A DNA stretch of 64,000 nucleotides from Entomortierella parvispora E1425 (taxonomy: Eukaryota > Fungi > Mortierellomycota), in NCBI GenBank assembly GCA_020891255.1, contig BQFW01000002.1, positions 1,736,001 to 1,800,000 of the forward strand. The letters run 5' to 3'. Of this stretch, positions 17,101-45,727 are shown one piece after another. Both the position numbers and the translations under genes were made by a program. The stretch's first letter is position 1. Each line of letters opens with the position of its first letter. The notes beneath the pieces are model-generated. The model did no database searches and was not told where the DNA came from. It saw only the letters and a program-made list of their open reading frames with translations.

Positions 17101-18141
17101 GCCAGCGGTGGCCACTCTGGGCCTGCTTCGAGAGTGACTTCTCCAGCTCCTCCAAGGGCCATGTCCAAGACTCCTGTTCAAGGAAGTAACCTTGCCAATC
17201 CCGTGACGATGGTCAAGATGAGTTCGCCTAGGGCCAGAAAGAGCAGCTCCCCCTCGAGTTTAATGTCGACGCCTTCCAACATGTCGTTTTTGGCCCCTCC
17301 AGGAGTTGGCGGCAAACGAACTTTCAAGTCCAGTAGCGCCAGCCCTTTGGCCGCAACACGCCAACCTTTTGGATCCAACGATGGTGGTCAAAGTGAATCG
17401 CAACAGTCGCCACTTCCTTCCAGGAACATGACAACATCTCCGGTGCCCATTTCGCAACCTCGGGCACTTTGGTCACCCTCGGTGTCAAGATCCGCAGTCC
17501 TTGGTGGGACGGCAAGTGCGGGAGGCCTGTCCAATGCATCTTTGCCATCTTTGGCAGCCAGTGCGGCCCAACCTATTCAGAATACGAGCGCGGCCTCTTT
17601 TACATTGAGTGGCAGCAGTCTAACAGCTGGCAGTAACGCTACACTTGCGGGCTCGAGCCAGCTAGGATCCTTTGGAATCAACCCCCTGGCCAAGATTATG
17701 GATACCATGATGATCAAGCCCCTCTTCCCTGATGGATTCGTCAATGACTCGGACAGCGATGCGGAAGAAGGACTGGATATTTTCAGTGACGATGAGGAAG
17801 AGGAAAGCAGCGAAGACGACACCTCGAGTGACGATGACGGCGATGACACGGACGAAGCAGATCGAGAGCTTAACTCGGATCTTCAGGAACCGACCCGTAA
17901 AATCAAACATATTCGCATCAAATCCAACAATGGAGCGTCCAAGACTCCAAAGAGACCCCACCAGCATCATCGAGGGTCCAGCAGAACCTTGAACAAGAAG
18001 CAGCTTGCAGCCAACGAAAAGATGATCACCCTGACTCAACTGTTGACCAACGTTGTGATTTTGGAGGAGGTGGTCAAGGAAGTGGTGGCGATTGCTCAAG
18101 TTCGCAAGGGCATGGGTGTGGACAAGGTCCGATTCTTGTAA
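14151..18141 (+). CDS. FHF complex subunit FHIP (FAM160/RAI16-like)
   Basis: Exon 1 MESSFWNKLKK...WLTIQ (14151-14264) plus a 3.77-kb exon. Motifs CMEYLFKNNILTKL, HPAVH-like HNAVHKPVVKLL, LFTYLSKFVHREGKSGDFARTGLL, NLALTGVITSLAVCP, C-terminal LLTNVVILEEVVKEVVAIAQVR. Confidence 0.85.
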
Positions 18142-18395
18142 AAAAAATAAACCATTACGTTTTCTCGTTTATTCGTTTTATTTTGTCGTTTGAAATGATT
18201 TAGTGTACTATAGGATGAACTATAGTAGGGTATTAGAATATTGTAATGCAGTGAAGGACTATTGATGAAAAAATGAGTTTGGGGGTTATGTGGTTAAAAC
18301 TACACACAAAAAAAAAGGTAAAAGATCTTGACCAGTGAGGTTGTCGATGGTGCTGCTGAGTGCGGGTGGTTTTTTTTTTTTTTTACTTTACTGGT

Positions 18396-20669
18396 TTACT
18401 GGTCCCGGAAATGTTCCTGTTTGAGCAATTGCTGGCAATGAAGCATGTGGATCTCGGCTTGTACCTCTTTTTGTTGCTGGATCAGTCTGGCCATCCTTTG
18501 TTTTGGGTCTTCGCACTCTTGCTTGATATAGATCAGATCGCTGACCTCGCCTTCCAACGTCGGCACGACATTGTCAGAGGAGCAGGCCAGTGGAGGGGAA
18601 GGGGTTGGATCAAAATGCAACAGTTGGCTAGTGCTCGCGCCGGTGCCGAGGAAACTGCCGTTCGCGGACTGGTTGTCCTCTCCATCCAAGCTCATGCCCA
18701 GACTCACGTCCAGACCACTCAGGTCGCAGGCCACTGGATCGACTTGAAGACTCTCGGGTGAACTCGTCGTCATGGTAAATAGACCTGACGATCCATTTTG
18801 ACTCTGCTGCTGCTGTTGATGTTGTTGTTGCTGCTGCTGAGGATGACGGAAATGAGACCAAAGCAAGGAGACATTGGGCGAAACACCGAGCTCCATGCAA
18901 TTCATTCTTTGCAAAGGAGGGACTTCGGCATTCCATACCGAAAGAGAAGGCACCATCGGACTCGACGAACTCACGATGGGGGTCGGCGTCATTGTTGGCA
19001 GAAAGGGAGTAGGCTGCGCTGGCTGCGACGTGTCCAGGGAAGAGGACCGATTCATCGGTGGAGCGCAACTCATGGCCAAGGCAGGTGAGGACTCGGCGGT
19101 GGTAGACAGCGTCGAGTTCAGCGACGAAGAAGAAATCGACGACATCGAATAGGTCGATGGATAAATGTAAGGGTAGGTCACATTTGGCCAAGGCCCTGAA
19201 GCGAGCTCGGGTGTAAAAGCAGGACTTGTGGACAGAGACCCCATCGGCGAGACCGAGTGTGGGGGACTTGTGGGTGCATACAGGTGACGAGAGATGGGCA
19301 ACGAGGGCCGTCGCTCGGGCCGCATTGGACGGCCTCTCCATTGAGGTGGAAAGGCAGGTGAGGCACTTCGGGAGTCGTAACTACCGACGCTGTTGGTGGG
19401 CGTCCCTACAGAGCTGACAGACGATTTGCGAGATTGCATATGCAAATATTGCTGCTGTTGTTGCTGTTGCTGTTGCAATGGCATCGACGGCAGTGGTGGT
19501 GCCAAAGGTGGAAGGGTAGAGGTCAATGCCGATGAGGACACGGACCTAGGAATGTATGGTGATTTGGGAGCCTGCGGAAGCGAGCGCACGCGTAGGCGAG
19601 GACCCTGTCGCTCCGGAAGATTTTGCGTGTACTTGATCACCTGAGGACCCAACTCTGGCCGTTGTGGCTGCGGGAACTGCTGAAGGTGATGCAATTGCAT
19701 CTGCTGCTGGTGGTGGTGCTGATAATGATGCTCACGAAGCTGCTGTTGGTGTTGTTGGTTGATCCTCGCCATGAGGATCGCCTCCGCGGCGGCTTTGCTG
19801 CCACCTTTGGGTCGACCTCTTGGTTTTGGACTGGCATCTCGGCAGGTCTTGGCCTTGGAGGGATGTTTGAGGCAACTCTGGCAAGGCCGACCACTGTCGC
19901 ATTTGATATGGGATCGTTTGCAACTTGCGCAGGCTGTCACGGAAGGGAGCATGGCGGATGAGGAAGGGTCATCGTAGTTGGGCGAGGTAGGCGATGACAT
20001 GGCCGACGAGGATGCTGAGCGCGATGAGTAGCTTAACGTCGGTGAGGAGGAAGGACCTGAGGAAGGAGACCGATGCCGACCAGCAGTAGCTTGTGAGGGA
20101 GCAAAAGGATGAAGGGTACCTCCGTGGCCTGTACGAATCGGGAGGTTTTCTGAATAGCCGGGCACGAGTGGACCCCCGATATTGAACCCAGTCGATCCGT
20201 CACTGTGGTTACCAAAGAGTGGGGACGAGGTGGGAGCTGCCTGGGCGCCATTCCCCTCAAAAGAGGGGAAGAGATCGAGGTCTTGCGTTTCGCGGCCCAT
20301 GGCTTGGATGAGTGGATTGAATTGGAAATCTTGGACTTGCGATGGATGCTGGTGATATTGAGGGTATTGTAGTTGCATGCTTTCGAGGAAACGCTCAGGG
20401 GTCACCAACGGCAAGGAGTGGACTTCTGATTCTGTAGATCCAAAGCCCATCGATACCACGGGCGAGGTCTGATAAAGATGTGTGACAGAGGATAGAGAGT
20501 TTGTTCTGGCTGTGGTTTTCTGCTGGTGTGTGTGCATTGGTGCTGAAGAGGATGAGGACGAAGTGGCAGGAATCTCTCGTCGAGGATGCATCGGTCCAAA
20601 ATTATAACCATAGAGTCCAGAGTCGTTTCCTGGGTATGATGTGGGAACTTTGTCGGACAGGGTTGTCAT
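18396..20669 (-). CDS. Zn(II)2Cys6 transcription factor with poly-Q and S/P-rich regions
   Basis: CASCKRSHIKCDSGRPCQSCLKHPSKAKTC fits C-x2-C-x6-C-x5-C-x2-C-x9-C. First ATG in the long ORF is at 20669. A likely 5' intron ends at 20682, so the true start could lie upstream. Confidence 0.85.
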   Translation of the reverse strand: MTTLSDKVPTSYPGNDSGLYGYNFGPMHPRREIPATSSSSSSAPMHTHQQKTTARTNSLSSVTHLYQTSPVVSMGFGSTESEVHSLPLVTPERFLESMQLQYPQYHQHPSQVQDFQFNPLIQAMGRETQDLDLFPSFEGNGAQAAPTSSPLFGNHSDGSTGFNIGGPLVPGYSENLPIRTGHGGTLHPFAPSQATAGRHRSPSSGPSSSPTLSYSSRSASSSAMSSPTSPNYDDPSSSAMLPSVTACASCKRSHIKCDSGRPCQSCLKHPSKAKTCRDASPKPRGRPKGGSKAAAEAILMARINQQHQQQLREHHYQHHHQQQMQLHHLQQFPQPQRPELGPQVIKYTQNLPERQGPRLRVRSLPQAPKSPYIPRSVSSSALTSTLPPLAPPLPSMPLQQQQQQQQQYLHMQSRKSSVSSVGTPTNSVGSYDSRSASPAFPPQWRGRPMRPERRPSLPISRHLYAPTSPPHSVSPMGSLSTSPAFTPELASGPWPNVTYPYIYPSTYSMSSISSSSLNSTLSTTAESSPALAMSCAPPMNRSSSLDTSQPAQPTPFLPTMTPTPIVSSSSPMVPSLSVWNAEVPPLQRMNCMELGVSPNVSLLWSHFRHPQQQQQQHQQQQQSQNGSSGLFTMTTSSPESLQVDPVACDLSGLDVSLGMSLDGEDNQSANGSFLGTGASTSQLLHFDPTPSPPLACSSDNVVPTLEGEVSDLIYIKQECEDPKQRMARLIQQQKEVQAEIHMLHCQQLLKQEHFRDQ

Positions 20670-23600
20670 GATGGTCCACAACTAACGCGTCGTTATTATT
20701 TCTTTTTTTCTTTTACGGAAAGGCGAGACGAGAAGACGAGAACAGGTTACCCGTTGAGGCGAATTGTGGTGGATGTTCGATATATATTTTTTGTGCTTGG
20801 GGCGCCGTCGAGTACGAAAGCAAAAAAAGAACTAAGAGCGTTGTGGGAGAGAAGCAAGAAGGGTGTGAGAAATCGAGAAAAACTGGTTACAGGGAGGTAG
20901 AACTAGTGAGTTTATAAAAGGAATGGGAGGATGGAAGGAACGGTGCTGCAGAAGCAACTGAAATTGTCCAATTGTCAACTTTGTGCAGTTGTACCTGATT
21001 TTCACCCTTAGGATGGGGGCAAGAAAAGAAGGGGAGAAGAAGGAAGTAACGGGATATCACTATCAAAGAACAGGCTACGGGAGTTGAGTCGAGGGGTTGA
21101 ATGGATTGAAGAAGGGCCGATCCGTGAGAGCTGACTGGGGGAGTGAACTAAAGACCGGAAGGGGTGGGCAGGCACCGGTGGGCGATGAGTCAATACCCTC
21201 CAAACAAACCTCCTCTTCCTTGTCAGAGGTCCCAACTTTCGGTCGCATGCATGCATGCCCGAGAAAATTACAAGATCGACGGAGAAGGATAAAAGGATGG
21301 ATGGACAGCTGTCTTTTGTTTTGATTTGTTGTTCGCAATTGAGCAACCAAAAAAAACAATAAATCCAGGGAGGAGTGGGGGGAGAGGGAGCAAGGAGAGG
21401 TAGGAAGCAGGAATGGGATTGTTTGCGCTTTTGTAGTCCTCAAGAACGATAGGACAGCCAGGAGGATGTGGCCAATGGCTCCAACAAAAATCAACACGTA
21501 CAAAAAAGGGCCACGAAATAATAGCTATCGTAAGCAGAGAAAAAAAAAGGAGTGGCATCGCTGTGCTTACTTTTTTTGTTGCTGCAGAGTCTGACTAGAC
21601 AGCTCCGTATGCCTTGTTTTTCGACGTTGACTGTTCACTCAGGTGAATACCTAACTCCTTGGTTAGGGCAAAGTCGCGGCTTTTTTTCCTGTTGTGGCGC
21701 GGGCAAAGGGATGCGGATAAAGGTGCGTGTCGTTTGGAAAAGCGGAGGAGGACTGTGTGATATTCAAAGATTGCGTGCGAAAGGCGGTGTTGCTTGTTTG
21801 TGGGTGCAAGGGTGTGCGTGCTCAGGGTGTGCGTATTCAAGAGGGCGTAGCTGAGTGAGCAAGTGCAAGACTATACGCACTGTGGTGGTCGGAGAGAGAA
21901 GGTATAGGGGTGGACGGAAGCGGATGGGAGTGGATAGGAGTGTTGAAGTCGGGTGTTGGCAGCGAGATTTGGTATACAGGCTGTAGAGAGCAAGGAATCA
22001 TAAAATGCGAAGAGACGACAATGAACAGAGAAGAAAGGGAGAGGGGGAGAAGAGAAAAAGAAGAAAGAAAATCGGTTGCGCGGAAGCCCCCTCGCTGCTT
22101 TTTTATACTCTGTTGATGGCGAGGGACGGACGGGCTCGGTCGACGTTGTTGGCGAACGCAAAAAGAAAAAAATAGGTGTCTGCCGCGCCTCTTTGCGATT
22201 CAACTGAACAGCAACTGAGTGGAATACCCGCTCCAGCCTGATGCCTCGAGCAAGAGCACCATGGCAACCAGTTCTGCTTCTCTGCCCTACCATTGCCCAT
22301 GCTCCTATGCACGCCTACTCACTTATTGATGCGACCATTGTTGATTATTAGCATCGTCACCATGGGCCCTTGAAATCAAAGAGCAAGATATCTTCCCGCC
22401 AAAACAATTTTTAAGAAATATCTCTGCATGCATGACAAACAGACAAACAAGGACAGGGACCATCCAGGCCAAAAGTCTCTCTGGAGGTTGGGCCATGGTC
22501 AGGGTATAAGAGCATCCTCCCTCACTCTCATAAGCACAAAACTGAAAGGCGTACAAAGAAAAAAGAAAAAAACGAGGACCCCCGTTGTGTGCCTGCGTGT
22601 GTAACTTTGTTAGAGTCGAGTCACCATTGGAGCATTGAATAACGTACAGCACAATACTCAGGCGTCTACTGAGGGTGGACCATGTACAAACCTAGAAGCT
22701 TGCAAGACTGTGCCTGCGTTCAGGTGCAAAAAAAATAGAATAGGAACAATAAAAAAAAGGCATTACGCTGGATTGCAGGACCTGTCGGGATTTGCTCCTC
22801 ACTCACACAGACACACAGATACATACACACACTTTCTCCTGCTGCCCTCACGTTGGCGAGGAGAACGCAAGGGTCGCCTCTAAAGAGATCCTGAGTCGTT
22901 CCCTCTGTTCGGCTCTCAGTTTACAGTTTAGTGGGCCAATCACCGCCGTTTTGGCCAACGTATGGCTTTGCTGGGGCCATGTCCATACCCAACTTTGACA
23001 ATCACTCCTCCCCCCAGCTCTGAACAGTAAACCGAGCTGGATAATCTTTCTTCTCTATCCTATCAAGATGTCGTGCTGCCCGATTTCAGAGTAGGTTTGT
23101 GTTGGATGTGTCACCCTGTGGTAAGCTTGCTGAGGAAAATGAGCCCAAGATGTACTTCTCGATTAGTTTAAGCGTCTGAGCGCCAAGGGCTTCTCGCACA
23201 GCTGCTCCGGGAAGGCAATAAACGCGAAGTGTCATTAAGGTCATTTGAACAAACGAGCACCCCTGCATCCCTCCCATTCCGCTCTCGCAATAGTCGCCCT
23301 CTCCTCTCCAGTTCTCCAAGGGACAATCTGAATATAGAAGTAGTAGACTAGATGGAATGAGCGGGAAAACGATCATTTTCTGGCGATTGCCTGCATGATT
23401 GAAACGAAGCACCATCCGTCCAACAGCCAGACAACAAAAAGGCACGCACGCACATACTTTTTTTTTACCCCTTCTTCTCGCTCCGCGGAATGGAACGGTC
23501 CAGTCAGGTCGCGATTTGCAAATAGGGTGACTGGCTATGGCTTTTGGGCACAGCTCACGCAAGCACTTCTGTTCTCATCTTCCCTCGTTTCCGTTGGTCC

Positions 23601-36566: not shown

Positions 36567-37938
36567 ATGACTGAACGCTCAAGGCCGAGCCGCTCTGCCT
36601 CATCCACCTCTTCCTCCTCTCGCCACAGAAGCTCGTCTGTCAGCAGTGATCGATCATCACGTAAAGCCAACAGGTCAAGCTCCTCTTCCACCTCCACAGC
36701 TCGCCATGGCACCTCTGCCCCTTCCTCAAGGTCTCCTCTCCACAGAAAGAGCTCCTCTGCTAAAACAACACCCATGCACGACGACACTGATGCCGGTCGA
36801 CTCATCCCAGTGGACAGACCTGCATTGGCCATTGATTACCTGGGCAATGGTTGGTGCAACGAGGACGACATTGCGGCCTCTTGGAAATTCATGACAAAGC
36901 AAAAGAATGATCTGATCAACGGTCTGCGCCTCGAAAACGCTTCATGGCGCAACTGGGCCAAACAACGACACCACTTGAAAACCGTCAGTCCAAAGTCTTT
37001 GAACTGGTAAGCAACCCTTCTCTCCTGCTGGAGACATTGGAATCTCGACTTTAGGCTTCTATTCATATGTCTCCGTCGTTGTCTGTGCAACGTTTCTTTA
37101 CTAACCAAAAAGAAAAAAAATCGTTATCTTTCCCCGCAAAAATAGGCTCAAAGACAGCGATACCACCTGGCTTTACGGCCCTCTATACAAAGCTAGCATT
37201 GACGAGTTTGATCTAGCAAGGTTTGGCACTCAAACGATATCAAACAGATCCACCACGATACCCACCACACCCACAGGCGAATACTCTGGACTCAAACCCG
37301 CACTCAAACATAAAACCGCATCCGAGCTGTTCAAGGAGGACACGCTCTTCCATGTTCAGTCGGATCTCAAACTGGACCGAAAGATTGAACCCTACAGCAA
37401 AGCCCAGGAGACGGCTGTTATCAAACAACATCGCCAGCCTAAGCTCAGGTTCAATGACTCGGTGGAGCAATGTGTCTCCATCAACTCTGATGTGGCCTCT
37501 GATGACGAACTCCAAGACGACGAAGATGAAGACGATGGTATCATGATGCGGATTTCTGATCGCCGCCGCCCTGCTAGAAGCATTGTCAGGATCAACCCAA
37601 CACGACTCAAGGCAGCCAATATTTATGGTGTTGAATCCGACGATGAATCAGAACCGTCAATAGCACCCGGCCGGTTATTCGCTGGATCAGAAACGACCTT
37701 TGTACGGTCAAAAGAAGACGACTCTGCGCAGAACGATGCCGGTGGGATTTCGTTTTCCAATGGTGGCACTAATTCTGGATCAGAACGAACAGCTCAGCCT
37801 CCGGCTGAAGGAACAGATGATGACGACAAGACACTGCCAAAAGGGGGGATTGGACGGCGAGCGGCCGATATGGTGAATAATGTAAAAGACATTGTCAATT
37901 GGGCCTCATCTCTTGTGTACAACAGCAGTACCTTTTAG
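36567..37938 (+). CDS. REG1: REG1-like PP1 (Glc7) regulatory subunit with DUF1752-type motif, 2 exons
   Basis: IDYL..W..EDDIAASW, LRLENASWRNWAK...LKTVSPKSLNW|LKDSDTTWLYGPLY (intron 37007-37145), LKPALKHK, RVxF-type docking KLRFNDSVEQCVSI. The symbol reflects resemblance only. Confidence 0.75.
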
Positions 37939-38260
37939 TCTACCGCAGTGAAAATATGCTACCCCTCATTCTCTTGTATATTATTAAACTCTTTACGTGT
38001 GAAAATAACAGAATCCGATAATGATGATTGTTGACTATGAACGCTGTGCGCACAGACTCATCGATGCAAAACGCCACCAATATTGGTCGATTACATTAAG
38101 GGTGTGCCTCGGAAGAATTACGTTAAATAGGACTTATTTCCATATATGGGCATTTGAGGATCGCCGGAGTTAAGGTAACTCGATGAAACAGTAATGGGTT
38201 TATAGACGTCTCGGAAATTCGATTTTCATCAAATCAAGTGTTCACAATTGTTTCATATAT

Positions 38261-38333
38261 GCCCGGCTAGCTCAATCGGTAGAGCGTCAGACTCTTAATC
38301 TGAAGGCTGTGGGTTCGACCCCCACGTTGGGCG
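38261..38333 (+). tRNA. tRNA-Lys(CTT), intronless, 73 nt
   Basis: GCCCGGCTAGCTCAATCGGTAGAGCGTCAGACTCTTAATCTGAAGGCTGTGGGTTCGACCCCCACGTTGGGCG. Anticodon stem TCAGA-CT[CTT]AA-TCTGA, A and B boxes intact, acceptor stem pairs. Confidence 0.97.
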
Positions 38334-38339
38334 CTTCTC

Positions 38340-38349
38340 TTTTGCTTTT
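38340..38349 (+). terminator. Pol III oligo-T terminator (TTTT-GC-TTTT) after the left tRNA; mirrored after the right tRNA
   Basis: Two T4 runs 6-16 nt downstream of the tRNA 3' end, conserved in both arms. Confidence 0.65.
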
Positions 38350-40458
38350 GCTTCTCCGGGCTTCCCCGTCATCTTCTCCTCGAGAGATCTATCCGCCGAC
38401 CAAGGAGGACTTTTCCTTTTGGGTTCGTTTTTCTGTCGACTCTGCTACCCCCTAACTATCGACCGCCGAACAGTCGATTTCTCTTCTTTTGTCTTTTCAC
38501 CTATATTCCTAGTTCATGTGCACACTCGTCAACTTTTGTCGAAATTTTATCTAGGTTGCCCATTTGTACGCACGCACGCAGATGTGCCAAGGAATAATAC
38601 AAGGAGAAGCTGATGAGTACGATCATGAGGTAAGGTCGGTGGTAATGGAGAGGAGATGTCTGTGGCTAAGAAACAAATCCGTCGGCAGATAGAAGAAGAG
38701 AAGTCGGCGGTTGAGAGGGGGTCGATAGATAAACCACCCAAAAGACCTCCTTGGCTGGTGGAAAACTAACGGACAGACTGAAAGGATGGCATCATACGCA
38801 CCCTCTTCATCTATTCATCTATACACTACATTTTTCTTTTTTTTTTTTTCGCCGACCACAGCTAGCGAACAATGTAGCAGACGAGGGACAAAAAAAAAAA
38901 AAGGCGCCAGGCCTGCAGGAGCGTGCTTACTGTATTTCCTGCGCCGTCTGGATGTCAGCTCGGAGCACAAGTGACGCGCTTCACACACACCACCTACCAG
39001 TAGAGCCCGGTATCTTAAATGCAAGAAGAGTAAGCTATATGTCTTCTTACACGCTAGCTCCTCGCGGATTCTCGCTCCAAACATTCTTCATAGAGGACGT
39101 TTAGGCGGTCGATCTGTATTTACTTTTCTCAAATACCGTGTCGATCTGAGATCCAAATACTCACCGTCGCTGAATCCATTTCTCGGTTGCTCTTGTTGTT
39201 GACTGGTTGCACTGATATCTAGAACATGAACAGCGTTGTTTCCTTCACTTGGCCAAGACCCTCTTTTATTGATAACGGGGCCAGGCGATCTAGGACCTTA
39301 ACTACCATAGGTGAAGTAGTAACCAAGCCCATTCCACACACAACGATACTAGGTCGCAGCAAGGTGTAACTCGTGCTCTTTGTCCTAGGTAGAGAATATA
39401 CAAGATAAGACAATGAGGGCAACGACAGTCGAACGCCCTGATGAAGAACTTTTCTGTTATAGAATTGTGCCTTGTAATTTCGCTGGACATGGCCGACCTG
39501 GCACTTTTTTTTTTTCCATCGTGCCTTGTAACTGGCGAAAGGAGCATGGCTCAAAGCAGTGGCAAGAAAGAATGCTTTGCGAGTTATTTTGCGAATACAC
39601 TGAAAATTGCATGAGTTTGTGATCATCTTGATCTGTCGTTCATGGCAGGAGACGTCGCGCAAGAATACAGGGGGGGTACGTATTTTTTTTGAAAGCCATT
39701 AAATAGTGGCACTGTGTGGTTTTGAAATAGGGCCCTGGGCGTTGTGGACTTGACAGAAGGTGCTTACCACATTTTGTTCCGTGGCCTCATCATACGTTCC
39801 TTGTTTGGATTTTCTATCTGCAGAGAGTAGGTAGAGTAGGTAGGTAGACAGCAGTGCGGTTGCCGCTCATTTGTATTGACGGATTTTTTTTTGTGTGGTA
39901 GATCAGCTCACTTCTATTTTTCCAGGCTAAACAAAACATAACGCCTACACGTTGAATACAAGGGCCGGATCCTTGAGTATCGTGAGCTCGATGTCCTTGT
40001 CGGATCGTTGTTCACGAACTCGATCTTAGTACATACTAGACGCTGTGCTCCTTGTTCGCGTCTCACAATATACGCCGCTGTCTATTTCTATAGCAAATAT
40101 TCACATATAAGATGGCGCCCTCTCCTCCATGTCAGTCAATTCATCTTGATCTTGGTGAGGATAGTTAGTCAAGTGGTTCAGAGAAGACCACATTTCGTTT
40201 CCTCGCTTCCACTATGGTGTTCTGAAACAGATGTTGATTATCATTATTGTTCTCGTATCGACGGCCGAAGATGGAAAAGATGATCATTTTACGATGTTAA
40301 AGCCTTGTGAAAGCGAGAGAGACGAGCGGGAAAAAAAGATAAGAAACTGCTAAGGTAATGTGTGAGAGTATGGGAAGATGGTCCGTGAAAAGAAAAAAAA
40401 AAAAGACGTGACCACCTCAGTTCTTGAGGTGAAGAAGGTGTGCACCAAGAAAGGAGGG

Positions 40459-40739
40459 AGCAAAAGCAAAAGATAAGCGCCCAACGTGGGGGTCGAACCC
40501 ACAGCCTTCAGATTAAGAGTCTGACGCTCTACCGATTGAGCTAGCCGGGCATATATGAAACAATTGTGAACACTTGATTTGATGAAAATTGAATTTCCGA
40601 GACGTCTATAAACCCATTACTGTTTCATCGAGTTACCTTAACTCCGGCGATCCTCAAATGCCCATATATGGAAATAAGTCCTATTTAACGTAATTCTTCC
40701 GAGGCACACCCTTAATGTAATCGACCATATTAGTGGCGT
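40459..40739 (-). repeat. Right arm of the inverted repeat (281 bp)
   Basis: Reverse complement of 38071-38352 at ~98.6% identity; ends 86 bp upstream of the b5 reductase ATG (40826). Confidence 0.97.
40478..40550 (-). tRNA. tRNA-Lys(CTT), identical to the copy at 38261-38333, convergent orientation
   Basis: Exact reverse complement of the left tRNA over all 73 nt. Confidence 0.97.
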
Positions 40740-40825
40740 CGAAGTCTATTATTCATCTCGAAGAAGTTTACCCCATACTGCACCTTCTCTCTCTCACTCT
40801 TCCCCCCCACAATCTAACACACAAA

Positions 40826-42026
40826 ATGTCTGCTGCTGCTACTGTCGCCACCGCCTTGGATCCCACCGCCTTCGTGGACTTCAAGCTCAAGAGTGTTGAG
40901 AAGCTTACTCCCAACACCAGCAAGTTCATCTTTGAGTTGCCCGAGGACCAAGTCCTGGGTATGACTGTCGCTTCCTGCTTGATGACAAAGTTTGTGAACG
41001 AGGAAGGAAAGGCCGTGATCCGCCCTTACACTCCCACCTCTGAGGCTGATGTCAAGGGTTCTTTCGAGTTTGTTGTCAAGAAGTACGATAGTAAGTATCG
41101 CGTTTCATTTTTCTTGGGATCGATTCAAATTAGATCAGGATGATGACAGAAATGATCGAAATGACAAATGAGGAGCCATGAGAATGAATCAGACAATGAG
41201 CATGCACCAACAGACGGTCACTTTACTTTTATTCCTCCATAGCTGGTGTCATGTCTGGCCACATCCACAACCTCAAGGTTGGCGAGACTCTTGCCATCAA
41301 AGGTACGCCAAAAATCTCGCCAAACAGGGGAAAAAGAAAAAAAATAATGACTCTGAATCCATCTCGTTCCTCGACCTGTTTTGTCCCACCATATTTTTCC
41401 GTGTTGACGCGATTTCTCTTTTTTTTTTGCTATCGAATCATTCCAGGCCCCATGACAAAGTACGCGCTCAAGCCCAACCAGCACGAGTCCATCTCGTTGA
41501 TTGCTGGTGGTACTGGCATCGCCCCTATGTTCCAGCTCATTGCCGGTATCCTCCAGAACAAGGATGACAAGACAAAGATCCATTTGATCTTTGGAAACGT
41601 TTCCGCACACGATATTATTCTCAAGGATGAGATCGATGCTTTCGCCAAGGCTCACCCCGAGCAATTCAAGGTCACCTATGTGATCGACAGCGCCTCTGAG
41701 GGTTGGGAGGGCGAGACTGGCTACATCACCGCCGAGATGATCAAGAAGCTCATCCCAGAGATCGGCTCGGCCGGTAACCAGGTCTTTGTTTGCGGTCCTC
41801 CTCGTAAGTTTTTTTTTCTTAAATTTTTTTCTCATTATCGTTTGGAAAGTGGACGGTGGCATGTCATTCTTGAAAACTAATCTCTGTCTCTGTTCTACCA
41901 CGTTGTTTTTCTTTAGCCATGATGGTCGCCGTGAGCGGACCCAAGGGCCCCAACTATACCCAGGGTGAGGTCAGCGGCGCTCTCCAGGAGCTCGGTCTCA
42001 CCATTGAGCAGGTTTACAAGTTCTAA
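40826..42026 (+). CDS. NADH-cytochrome b5 reductase (MCR1-type C-terminus, no N-terminal anchor), 4 exons
   Basis: FAD motif RPYTP, VKKYD|TGVMSGHIH, NADH motif IAGGTGIAPM, FGNVS..DIILK, VCGPP, C-terminal GPKGPNYTQGEVSGALQELG...VYKF*. Confidence 0.93.
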
Positions 42027-42082
42027 GGTGGCGTTTGCCGGAAAACGAGGCTTTTTTTTCTTTTTCCCATAGACTAATAAAT

Positions 42083-44604
42083 CTACATCACAATAGTCTG
42101 GAGTTCATAAAAGAGGATATAACCGTTCCGTGCCCAATCAGACTCCATGTCCATGCTCTGAGCAGAATCGCGTTCAATGGTATGAACCCTTTGACCAGAT
42201 GGATCCAAGTCATCGTGTTTCAACCATCGAGGTTCCTGAAAGGCGAGTGGGTGAACAGACCTTGCTGGCGATGGCGTCGAACCTACCACATCCGCAACAT
42301 AACTTCTGTAGTGACCAGAATCCAATCGAGATCCAACATGACAAACGACGGACTTGAGCTCCAGCATATATTTGACTTTGGGTTGTTGGCAATCCAGGTA
42401 GTCGCTTGTTCCGTTGGTGTCCAGAGGACTGGGCGACCATCCTCTCTTGTCGTCAGATGCATCCGGAAATTGCTTCGAAGGTGAGTATTGGGGTGGTGGA
42501 GTAACAGGGGTACGTGGCGATTCGGCGGCTTGTAGCAATGACATAGAATACTTCCGGTTGGAGGGCGAAACTTGGGTATTGATCTTCATAGCAGAGAAGC
42601 TTTGAGCTGCAGAGGAGGCTCCAGCCGTTGATCTGTCGTCTTTGTTCGATGTTACATCCAGCAGTTGGTCGGGTTCTGATGAGAACTGAGCTGAAAGTGG
42701 CGACAACGAAGAGGCAGAGGCTGAAGAGGCAAATACCGGCGCTGTAGACCCTGATGTTGACGTGGCTAAATTCTGAACAGATCCAGTTGCCGTAACTGCC
42801 GTCTTTGAGTCGAGTTTTGATTCCGTAGTTTGAGGATTCACAAAGCGCGAAAAATCAATACGCCGAGGAATGTCAATTGGAGTTCCTATCCGCCTTGCCC
42901 TTCCGTCTGCTCCAAAAGAATACCGCTTGAGGATCAGAGGCAAAATCACCACATCGGCAGGGTATTGGGACTGACTCGCATGAATGATCCCGCCTTGTTC
43001 ATTCGTAGAGGAGTAAAATGGCAGCAGTTCCAGGACCTGCCAGGCAGACACAGGAACCTCTACGCCCGGCGATAGTGGCGCGCCTGTGCCAGAAGACACA
43101 AGTCGTCGAATTCCCGTCAGAGTGTTATCATAAAAATGTTGGGCCAGCAACTGTTCCAGTGAAAGGATCTCGTTCATGGACGACCCTTGACCAGCAGGGT
43201 CGATCAAAGAAAAACTTAGAGATGATGTAAGCGATGGGGATTTTGAGTGTCCAGGTTCTGGCGTGGGAATGGAAATCTGAAGCATTCTTTCCGTGATCAC
43301 TTTATCATCGTCAGCTGAAACCCTGGCACCGTGGAGAAGTCTCTGTTCCAGCGGTAAATAAGGTAGGTGCAGTTTTTCAGTTAAGAACATGAACAGCTCG
43401 CTCGAGTCCTCCTGTCTGCTGCTTCCTGGAGGATCCATAGGTCCTGGACAATGCCATCCGCAGCTGTAGAGGTGTTGGCGAAGCTCCTTTACAACATGTG
43501 CTTGCACCAACTTTCCTGACCGAAGCTGATTCACAAACATGCGCAGCCAGGTTTGTAGACGGTGGGTGTGTAGTAGATTTTCCTGTCTTTCTTCGTCCCT
43601 TTTTTGCTCTGTAGCATCACCGCTGACGTCGCTGTCACTATCGCTTTCTGCATCCAGATTCACATTCAACAGGCCTTCAAACGCGGACAGCCGGGCGAAC
43701 ATTGCAAACAGCAACGCATCTATGACGAAGGGACATGGTTAGTCAAGAGAAAAACATGAAACCTTAATCCGGATAAAGGTTTTGGTCCCTTCCGCATCGA
43801 TTATTCCATGACAGGTGTTGACATACCGATATAGCAGCTCGTCATCTGATCGTTGACGGCACCACTCAAGAATGCTTCTCCCTGGACCGGAAGTAGTGTT
43901 CCTTCAACAGCTTGCACCAAGTCCTGAGAGTACAGTAGCGTCTGGTCAATGTCCCACTGATATGAACTGAGCAGGTACTCGGCGGTTTCCTCGTCAGCGC
44001 GATGGCCAGCATGCTCAAAATAGGACATCACGCGAAGAAGGAGCACCTGTTGTTCAGGGTCTAGGCTGTTTCCTGACCTCTGTCGTTCTCTTGGAGCCAA
44101 TCCAGATTGGGGTTCAGGAGCACAGAGCTGACTTCCTGCAGAGAGAATAGACGACGATGGTAAAGACGCCGACCGATAGTGCTGTCCACTGCCACCATCC
44201 ATTGAGCTCCGTGGAGGGGCAAGTCCACCTACAAATCCTTGGCTTGCTGTGCCACTGCCGCTTGAAGAGATAGAGTATTTGTGCTTGTGAACGTGGAGAT
44301 AGGACTTGATGTTCTTTATGAGCTTGATGGGGGATCGAGATCGTTTCAAGCCTTCTTTACCCTCTTTGGTTTTCTTGGATTCCTTGTCACTCTTTTCCTT
44401 TTTGATGCGGATTGAAGGGTTACGTCGGAAGAGTGAGGTGTTTGCGGTGCTGCTGTTCTTGGGCGAAGCTGTCACGGTCGCAGGCGGGGTCGTGGGAACA
44501 GCAGTGGCGTGAGTGTGCGTGATGCCAGTAATGGGAGAGGAGGCGGAGGTCGATGGAGCGCCATGCCGGGTCTCCCGCGAAGGCAGTGGCGGTGGAGGGT
44601 TCAT
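42083..44604 (-). CDS. USP/C19-family ubiquitin C-terminal hydrolase (CYLD-like Cys box), 2 exons
   Basis: Cys box NDQMTSCYI|DALLFAMF across the intron at ~43823-43723, QEDSSELFMF, LPLILKRY, His box VVCHVGSRLDSGHYRSY, WLKHDD. Confidence 0.85.
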
Positions 44605-45727
44605 GGGAAATGCGAAGCAAGAATAGGTGAATGGGTGCAAGGAGAAGAGCTTGCTGCGAAAGAGAGGATGTATGAGTGGAGAAGGAGAGGGGATGAAAAG
44701 AATCAAAACACGCGAATGTGACGGTAATGACGGTGAAGAAAGAGGAGCGAGATTCTGCGCCCGTTTCAGTGCGGTGGGGCGCGAAAGTCGAAAATTACGC
44801 AGTTGGAGGTGTGGGGGGTACAGTAACTTTGTTGATCAGGCAGTGCATGTGCTATGGGAAGAACAATGCAATGAAACTGATGCTGTTGAACGCACAGCAG
44901 GGCCGACGCTGTTCATCCTTTTCTCTGCTCTTCTTCCTAGTCCTTTCACGCTGCAGGACTCGATTATCCAACCGACACAACACAACCTTGCCAACCCGTT
45001 TCCTGTTTCTTCTCTTGTGCTCTGAACTTGGCGCTTTGTTGGGCGACAGCCCTGTCTTGTGGCCCTTCTTGCGCCAAAAGATCAAGGCAGAGAGATAGGT
45101 GGCCTGATTGATGCTTGTTGTTGAAGTTGTTGTTGTTGTGGTTCTCTGCTGGTTTTGTCAGCAGCAGGTTTGCATCACAATTCCTTCCCACCATCCGCTT
45201 GCCACCAATTTTGACCTTGGAACAACGTGGCAACGGAAGGAGAGCCAAGGCGCATTCCATGGTTCTTTATCCAGTGGCCATTGCGCCATAACGGCAACGG
45301 GTGAACCCATGCACATGTCTGGATCCCCAAAGCCAGAGATCTTATCAGCAATATTTCACAGGGGCAACACGGACGTACGTTGTGCCGACCTTCAGCCTGG
45401 CGGCTGCAACTGCACAGCCCGTCTTCAACCCCCTTCGTTGATGGGTGAACATTGTCCCCTTATTTTTTCTGTGTCCAACCCATATCATCCTTTCTTCCTT
45501 TCTTCATTCACTTCGTCCTTCCAGTTGAATTGTTCCTCGACCATTCCCTCATCCTTTCTTTCTTTGTTCTTACTTCCCTCTTCCGTCCTCCTCTTCTCAT
45601 TGCTTCTTTGTTTTTCCAGTAGGTACGGACCAACGTACTTCGCTTTCTTGACATTGCGGTTTTACCCGACCTTCTTCTCATTCTGTTCCAACTGTCTGTA
45701 GCACATCTTCATACCATCCCAAACGCA

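Follow-up and report, generated by a model that had tools for sequence, protein, structure and literature searches.

How does a fungal chromosome come to carry two identical tRNA genes that face each other across 2.1 kb of other DNA, each embedded in the same upstream sequence? The question is raised by a locus of the soil fungus Entomortierella parvispora, which lies in a window of 64,000 nucleotides (the whole stretch of DNA that was analysed) from an assembly of 38.9 Mb in 20 contigs, near chromosome level, of this member of the Mortierellaceae. A first-pass annotation, made from the letters of the window, had described a near-perfect inverted repeat with a complete tRNA-Lys gene in each arm and had offered three readings of it, namely a very recent inverted duplication, a pair homogenized by gene conversion, or a non-autonomous fold-back or terminal inverted repeat (TIR) element that had captured a Pol III gene, with the added suggestion that recombination between the arms would flip the enclosed DNA like a switch. 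Here, we examine the arms, the DNA between them, their relatives in the genome, and the corresponding locus of a related fungus. The tRNA-Lys inverted pair is best read as a local duplication of a type met repeatedly in this genome, and is neither a jumping gene nor a proven switch.

Results

A repeat search of the window returned inverted arms at 38084-38352 and 40459-40727 (269 nt, 99% complementary, 2106 nt apart), which reach 38071-38352 on the plus strand and 40459-40739 on the minus strand, a length of 282 bp, once gaps are allowed in the alignment. Over this length the arms are 98.6% identical and differ at exactly four positions, just as had been annotated: three substitutions, at 38078 (C/T), 38221 (G/A), and 38337 (C/A), and one indel at 38083 (T/gap). 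Three of the four differences sit close to an arm end, at distances of 7, 12, and 15 bp; under uniform placement, the probability that at least three of four would fall within 15 bp of an end is approximately 0.004, with the threshold picked post hoc. Each arm is made up of 190 bp of 5′ flank, a tRNA-Lys(CTT) gene, and a T-rich trailer of 18 to 19 bp, in which the two copies differ at 38337. ARAGORN and Infernal (Rfam RF00005, 68.2 bits for each copy) agree on two complete genes at 38261-38334 (plus strand) and 40477-40550 (minus strand), which are identical in sequence and converge across the 2106-bp spacer, consistent with the original description. Each copy has the appearance of a functional Pol III gene, and the immediate effect of the pair would be one extra tRNA-Lys(CTT) gene.

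The identity stops as abruptly as the annotation had stated. Past the arm ends, on the inner as well as the outer sides, local alignments over 40 to 300 bp found no homology and scored like shuffled sequence (z of 0 to 2), and there is thus no sign of a larger, decayed duplication. Direct reading of the outer ends, with GATGCAA immediately before the left arm and CGAAGTC immediately after the right one, gave no direct repeat, in agreement with the reported absence of a target-site duplication. The left arm starts 133 bp past the stop codon of the upstream plus-strand gene, the 3′ part of which (36567-37938) encodes a GATA_AreA-type domain (PF08550) and which had been labelled REG1-like. The outer end of the right arm lies 87 bp before the ATG, at 40826, of a plus-strand gene for NADH-cytochrome b5 reductase (40826-41880) that has at least two exons and the FAD_binding_6 and NAD_binding_1 domains; when its exons were searched singly, not joined, the closest named relatives were all from Mortierellaceae. 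A gene for a UCH-type protease lies farther to the right on the minus strand. At some distance from the repeat, the part of the window from 18001 to 22000 has a strong positive GC skew (0.21-0.33) over approximately 4 kb, in the same place as a long ORF on the minus strand (18396-20681), and no tandem repeat was found that would account for the skew.

An inverted repeat of this kind may, with a very slight probability, reflect misassembly that doubled a single tRNA locus, as chimeric long reads can create inverted repeats. The arms differ at four positions, however, and they enclose 2.1 kb of unique DNA and are bounded on the outside by unique flanks that differ from each other. Moreover, the assembly is near chromosome level, and like architecture recurs at other tRNA loci of the genome, described below. 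In view of the four arm differences, the unique flanks, and the recurrent architecture, an assembly artefact is unlikely.

The spacer (38353-40458, 2106 bp) has a GC content of approximately 45% and is non-coding by all tests. Its ORFs are short and mutually overlapping, and none of them is transposase-like or has a Pfam match above threshold, which upholds the earlier view of a transposase-free spacer. Apart from the two tRNAs, no Rfam family was found in the region, even at E ≤ 1. The codon-usage log-likelihood, from a score trained on the long ORFs of the window, is at most 4.7 in the spacer, which is the background level, and 8 to 12 in the neighbouring exons. Sub-threshold matches to DUF1561 and PK-repBA in the spacer were taken as noise. 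From its sequence, we conclude that the spacer has no detectable gene inside it.

This emptiness bears on the proposal that the locus works as a programmed switch, the 2.1-kb spacer being flipped by arm-to-arm recombination so as to alter expression. The geometry does permit an inversion that would leave both flanks unaltered, and arms of 282 bp are reportedly about as short as efficient mitotic homologous recombination in yeast allows (Jinks-Robertson et al. 1993). Nevertheless, we found no recombinase within the structure or beside it, the spacer ORFs being without Pfam matches and the neighbouring genes encoding the b5 reductase, the UCH protease, and the GATA_AreA-domain protein. Since the spacer lacks coding potential above background, any ORF family or RNA family, and a recombinase, a flip would have no visible consequence, which weakens the idea of a switch. 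In addition, the DNA beside the tRNA gene in the related fungus described below matches the spacer in neither orientation and so provides no evidence of a flip, and similar tRNA pairs elsewhere in the E. parvispora genome enclose unrelated DNA. We therefore consider a programmed switch highly improbable. Homologous recombination between arms of 282 bp could turn the spacer around as a passive event, and nothing indicates any use of such an inversion.

Copy number in the genome speaks to another interpretation, that 38071-40739 is a non-autonomous TIR or fold-back element whose terminal repeats carry a captured tRNA gene. Long, near-identical inverted termini with sharp ends are in keeping with such an element, as is the presence within the spacer of a small, imperfect fold-back of approximately 370 bp (38386-38762; DNA fold z of -3.2), which starts 52 bp behind the left tRNA-Lys gene and has one partial relative downstream of another tRNA gene. 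The relative is a stretch of contig 1 (L025:3010-3084), located 83 to 157 bp downstream of a tRNA-Met gene, that is 82% identical to the 75-bp piece at 38386-38460 forming the left end of the fold-back. A multi-copy MITE family was considered for the fold-back at 38392-38762 and rejected: its terminal 17-mer has only two exact copies, and the contig 1 relative is without a matching second arm. Apart from the 75-bp piece, the spacer is single-copy genome-wide, and in a search of all 38.9 Mb the 190-bp 5′ flank of the arms was found only in these two arms, so that the genome-wide comparison suggested by the first-pass annotation gave no further copies of the flank and, for the spacer, only the short piece at 82%. 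An element of this type is thus at odds with its being the single such structure in the genome, with flank and spacer lacking other copies, and also with the missing target-site duplication, the lack of a transposase remnant, and, as shown next, a right "terminus" that is a resident tRNA gene, kept in position and sequence beside the b5 reductase of the related fungus. On these grounds the TIR element is very unlikely.

The related locus was reached by a metagenome scan with the closest b5-reductase fragment (P0001), which led to a contig of 5595 bp (Ga0302182_10005931, hereafter L026). This contig is collinear with 40455-44809 of the window at 80.7% identity, and its only tRNA-Lys(CTT) gene, a minus-strand one, sits where the right arm does; it covers the b5-reductase side and runs only 1.2 kb past the tRNA. 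The position of this gene indicates that the right arm is the resident, ancestral copy and the left arm the derived one. On this comparison, the right arm is the ancestral, syntenic tRNA-Lys gene and not the terminus of an element. The synteny proposed for comparison between the REG1-like gene and the b5 reductase is thus retained on the right in one relative, with the left side lying outside the contig. The tRNA-Lys unit of L026 is approximately 78% identical to either arm. When L026 is used to polarize the differences between the arms, the right arm is derived at 38078 and the left arm at 38337, and this one derived change per arm at the two polarizable sites indicates that the two units have each gone on changing since one was last copied from the other.

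Similarity between the two species in this region spans 40455 to approximately 40741, and its limits fall within approximately 4 bp of the arm ends at 40459 and 40739. Outside the conserved block, the b5-reductase promoter is only 53% identical to that of L026. A sensitive blastn comparison of L026:146-1214 with 37000-40458, on both strands, gave only poly-A/T matches like those of shuffled sequence, a result that is uninformative on rearrangement, as unconstrained DNA is saturated at this distance (the b5-reductase promoter, at 53%, being an example). The very end of the contig (L026:13-145) matches, at 78 to 81% identity, a repeat that is dispersed through the E. parvispora genome in 23 or more copies, suggesting a transposable element family common to both fungi.

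Besides the two arms, 15 other tRNA-Lys-like loci were found in the genome, and these match the arm only over the tRNA and at most approximately 19 bp of trailer. The first-pass annotation had started from the premise that isoacceptors share the mature sequence only, which does not hold in this genome: the dispersed tRNA-Lys(CTT) genes share approximately 50 to 100 bp of 5′ flank at 82 to 95% identity. In a family alignment, the elements shared among these copies are a TATA-like box, ATATAGATGTC, and the sequence CAACAAAT, which adjoins the tRNA. Most of the dispersed genes have, together with the conserved ATATAGATGTC, two upstream TCACGTGA boxes, which are E-box-like palindromes. The TCACGTGA palindromes stand at approximately -80 to -120 from the tRNA, at loci L005-L010, L012, and L003 on contigs 2, 5, 13, and 14. 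Neither the present locus nor its orthologue on L026 has CACGTG boxes, and in both the distance from the TATA-like box to the tRNA is longer by approximately 22 bp.

Paired tRNA genes are common in this genome. A census of tRNA neighbourhoods, which covered approximately 40 loci and two coordinate lists, revealed same-anticodon pairs in all orientations, the identity of their flanks grading between 74% and 100%. The closest analogue of the tRNA-Lys inverted pair is a tRNA-Ile(AAT) triplet on contig 6 (L075:7973-9631, at ~1.896 Mb), in which copies 2 and 3 are inverted and converge on a spacer of approximately 1.2 kb, with 100% identity over 213 nt and 99% over 257 nt, and copy 1 lies in direct orientation and is 93% identical. 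Other pairs are a convergent tRNA-Lys pair on contig 2 with its genes 7.4 kb apart (100% over an 85-nt tRNA block and 80 to 85% in the 5′ flank), a direct tRNA-Lys pair on contig 4 (86% over 545 bp), a divergent tRNA-Met pair with a 112-bp repeat at 99%, and a convergent tRNA-Phe pair that has the tRNA alone in common. Repeats of other pairs in this genome stop at about +19 to +24. More neighbours of the same family, 0.2 to 14 kb apart, appear in the two coordinate lists. At least 10 same-family pairs lie within 10 kb of each other, compared with fewer than one expected at random by a rough hand estimate that places a few hundred tRNA genes randomly in 38.9 Mb, which indicates that local tRNA duplication is the rule in this genome.

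Two further arrangements were seen among these neighbourhoods. Head-to-head pairs of different tRNAs, 150 to 190 bp apart, occur as Ser-Arg, Lys-Glu, and Lys-Ile combinations (L014/L015, L003, and L010/L074). The Ser-Arg module is present at two loci (contig 2 at 1.555 Mb and contig 14 at 1.355 Mb) that are 74% identical over 366 bp, suggesting that whole two-gene modules are copied too. A repeat of 0.6 to 2.8 kb, with copies 96 to 99.8% identical, abuts the 5′ side of Met, Lys, and His tRNA genes (L013, L020, L025, L076, and L077, on contigs 8, 15, and 1).

Discussion

The structure at 38071-40739 is best explained by a local inverted duplication of the complete resident tRNA-Lys(CTT) transcription unit, with a recent last copying event, a reading to which we assign a probability of roughly 0.78. 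The structure of the arms can be read directly from the alignment, and the history of their copying is reconstructed from it and from L026. The copied unit would have extended from a promoter-bearing 5′ flank, at -190, through the Pol III terminator, at +19. From the ancestral right copy beside the b5 reductase, a reversed left copy would have come to lie 2.1 kb off, immediately downstream of the gene with the GATA_AreA-type domain. The pair has the features of a local tRNA duplicate, with the same anticodon in both copies, a common flank, an intact gene in each arm, and other pairs of graded similarity in the same genome. We suggest that it belongs to a genome-wide process of birth and death combined with concerted evolution, in which tRNA units would be copied locally and in either orientation.

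The last copying event was either the duplication or a subsequent gene conversion from arm to arm, two possibilities that we regard as about equally likely. Arm-to-arm identity is 98.6%, against approximately 78% to the L026 orthologue, the relation expected of copies homogenized by conversion, and the high identity of the arms would follow from a last copying event that was recent relative to the split from the L026 lineage. "Recent" refers here to that event; one relative, with its contig ending 1.2 kb past the tRNA, places no bound on the age of the duplication itself. That the arm ends coincide with the ends of the conserved block, and that differences cluster at the edges, is expected if conversion homogenizes a constrained unit that runs from promoter to terminator. 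The same two features would also arise from duplication breakpoints dictated by the margins of the Pol III complex. Neither is predicted by a young, random duplication. Of the three readings in the first-pass annotation, recent inverted duplication and gene conversion thus both fit and are not separable, and the fold-back element is set aside by the two copies of the flank, the single-copy spacer, the absence of a target-site duplication, and the resident tRNA of the relative.

Local copying of tRNA genes has precedent. According to PMC4981973, which cites Amstutz et al. 1985 (S. pombe), tRNA genes give rise to copies both nearby and elsewhere, and intergenic conversion makes them evolve in concert. 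The locus described here resembles such systems in that same-anticodon copies lie close together, have flank as well as mature sequence in common, and are far more alike between copies than between species. It differs in that the near-identical tract spans the whole 190-bp upstream region and ends where the block conserved between species ends, and in that the pair is inverted and convergent. Palindromes and inverted repeats that are maintained by conversion, such as those of sex chromosomes and plastids, provide a second parallel. The arms of the tRNA-Lys pair are approximately 99% identical while the orthologue is approximately 22% diverged, and their differences are concentrated at the edges; these arms, however, are very short, at 282 bp, and hold a single Pol III gene. 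Fold-back and TIR elements of the MITE-like and Pack-MULE-like kinds likewise have long terminal inverted repeats around non-coding DNA, but the present structure lacks a target-site duplication, is single-copy, and has an ancestral resident gene as one of its arms.

Chromosomal rearrangements are often bounded by tRNAs and transposable elements (PMC2817429), and the breakpoint of the duplication described here lies similarly at the tRNA terminator (+19), although the involvement of fork stalling or break-induced copying is in this case only conjectural. We speculate that one mechanism linked to the Pol III complex might recurrently make tRNA-bearing inverted repeats by copying the promoter-to-terminator unit in reverse orientation, for example through breaks where the TFIIIB/TFIIIC footprint ends or through template switching after forks have stalled at tRNA genes. 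The resulting pairs might then be kept alike by conversion and could flip or insulate the DNA that they enclose. We hold this broader proposal to be improbable.

By itself, the tRNA-Lys pair amounts to an ordinary extra copy of a tRNA gene, and its value is the modest one of a well-delimited case in a series. The genome holds several inverted pairs of tRNA units in which the repeat ends at the Pol III terminator, and in the tRNA-Lys pair the ends of the repeat are also those of the conserved unit. A full census of such pairs could reveal whether a specific, Pol III-linked mechanism of tRNA duplication operates in Mortierellaceae, and whether gene conversion homogenizes short inverted repeats in this family.
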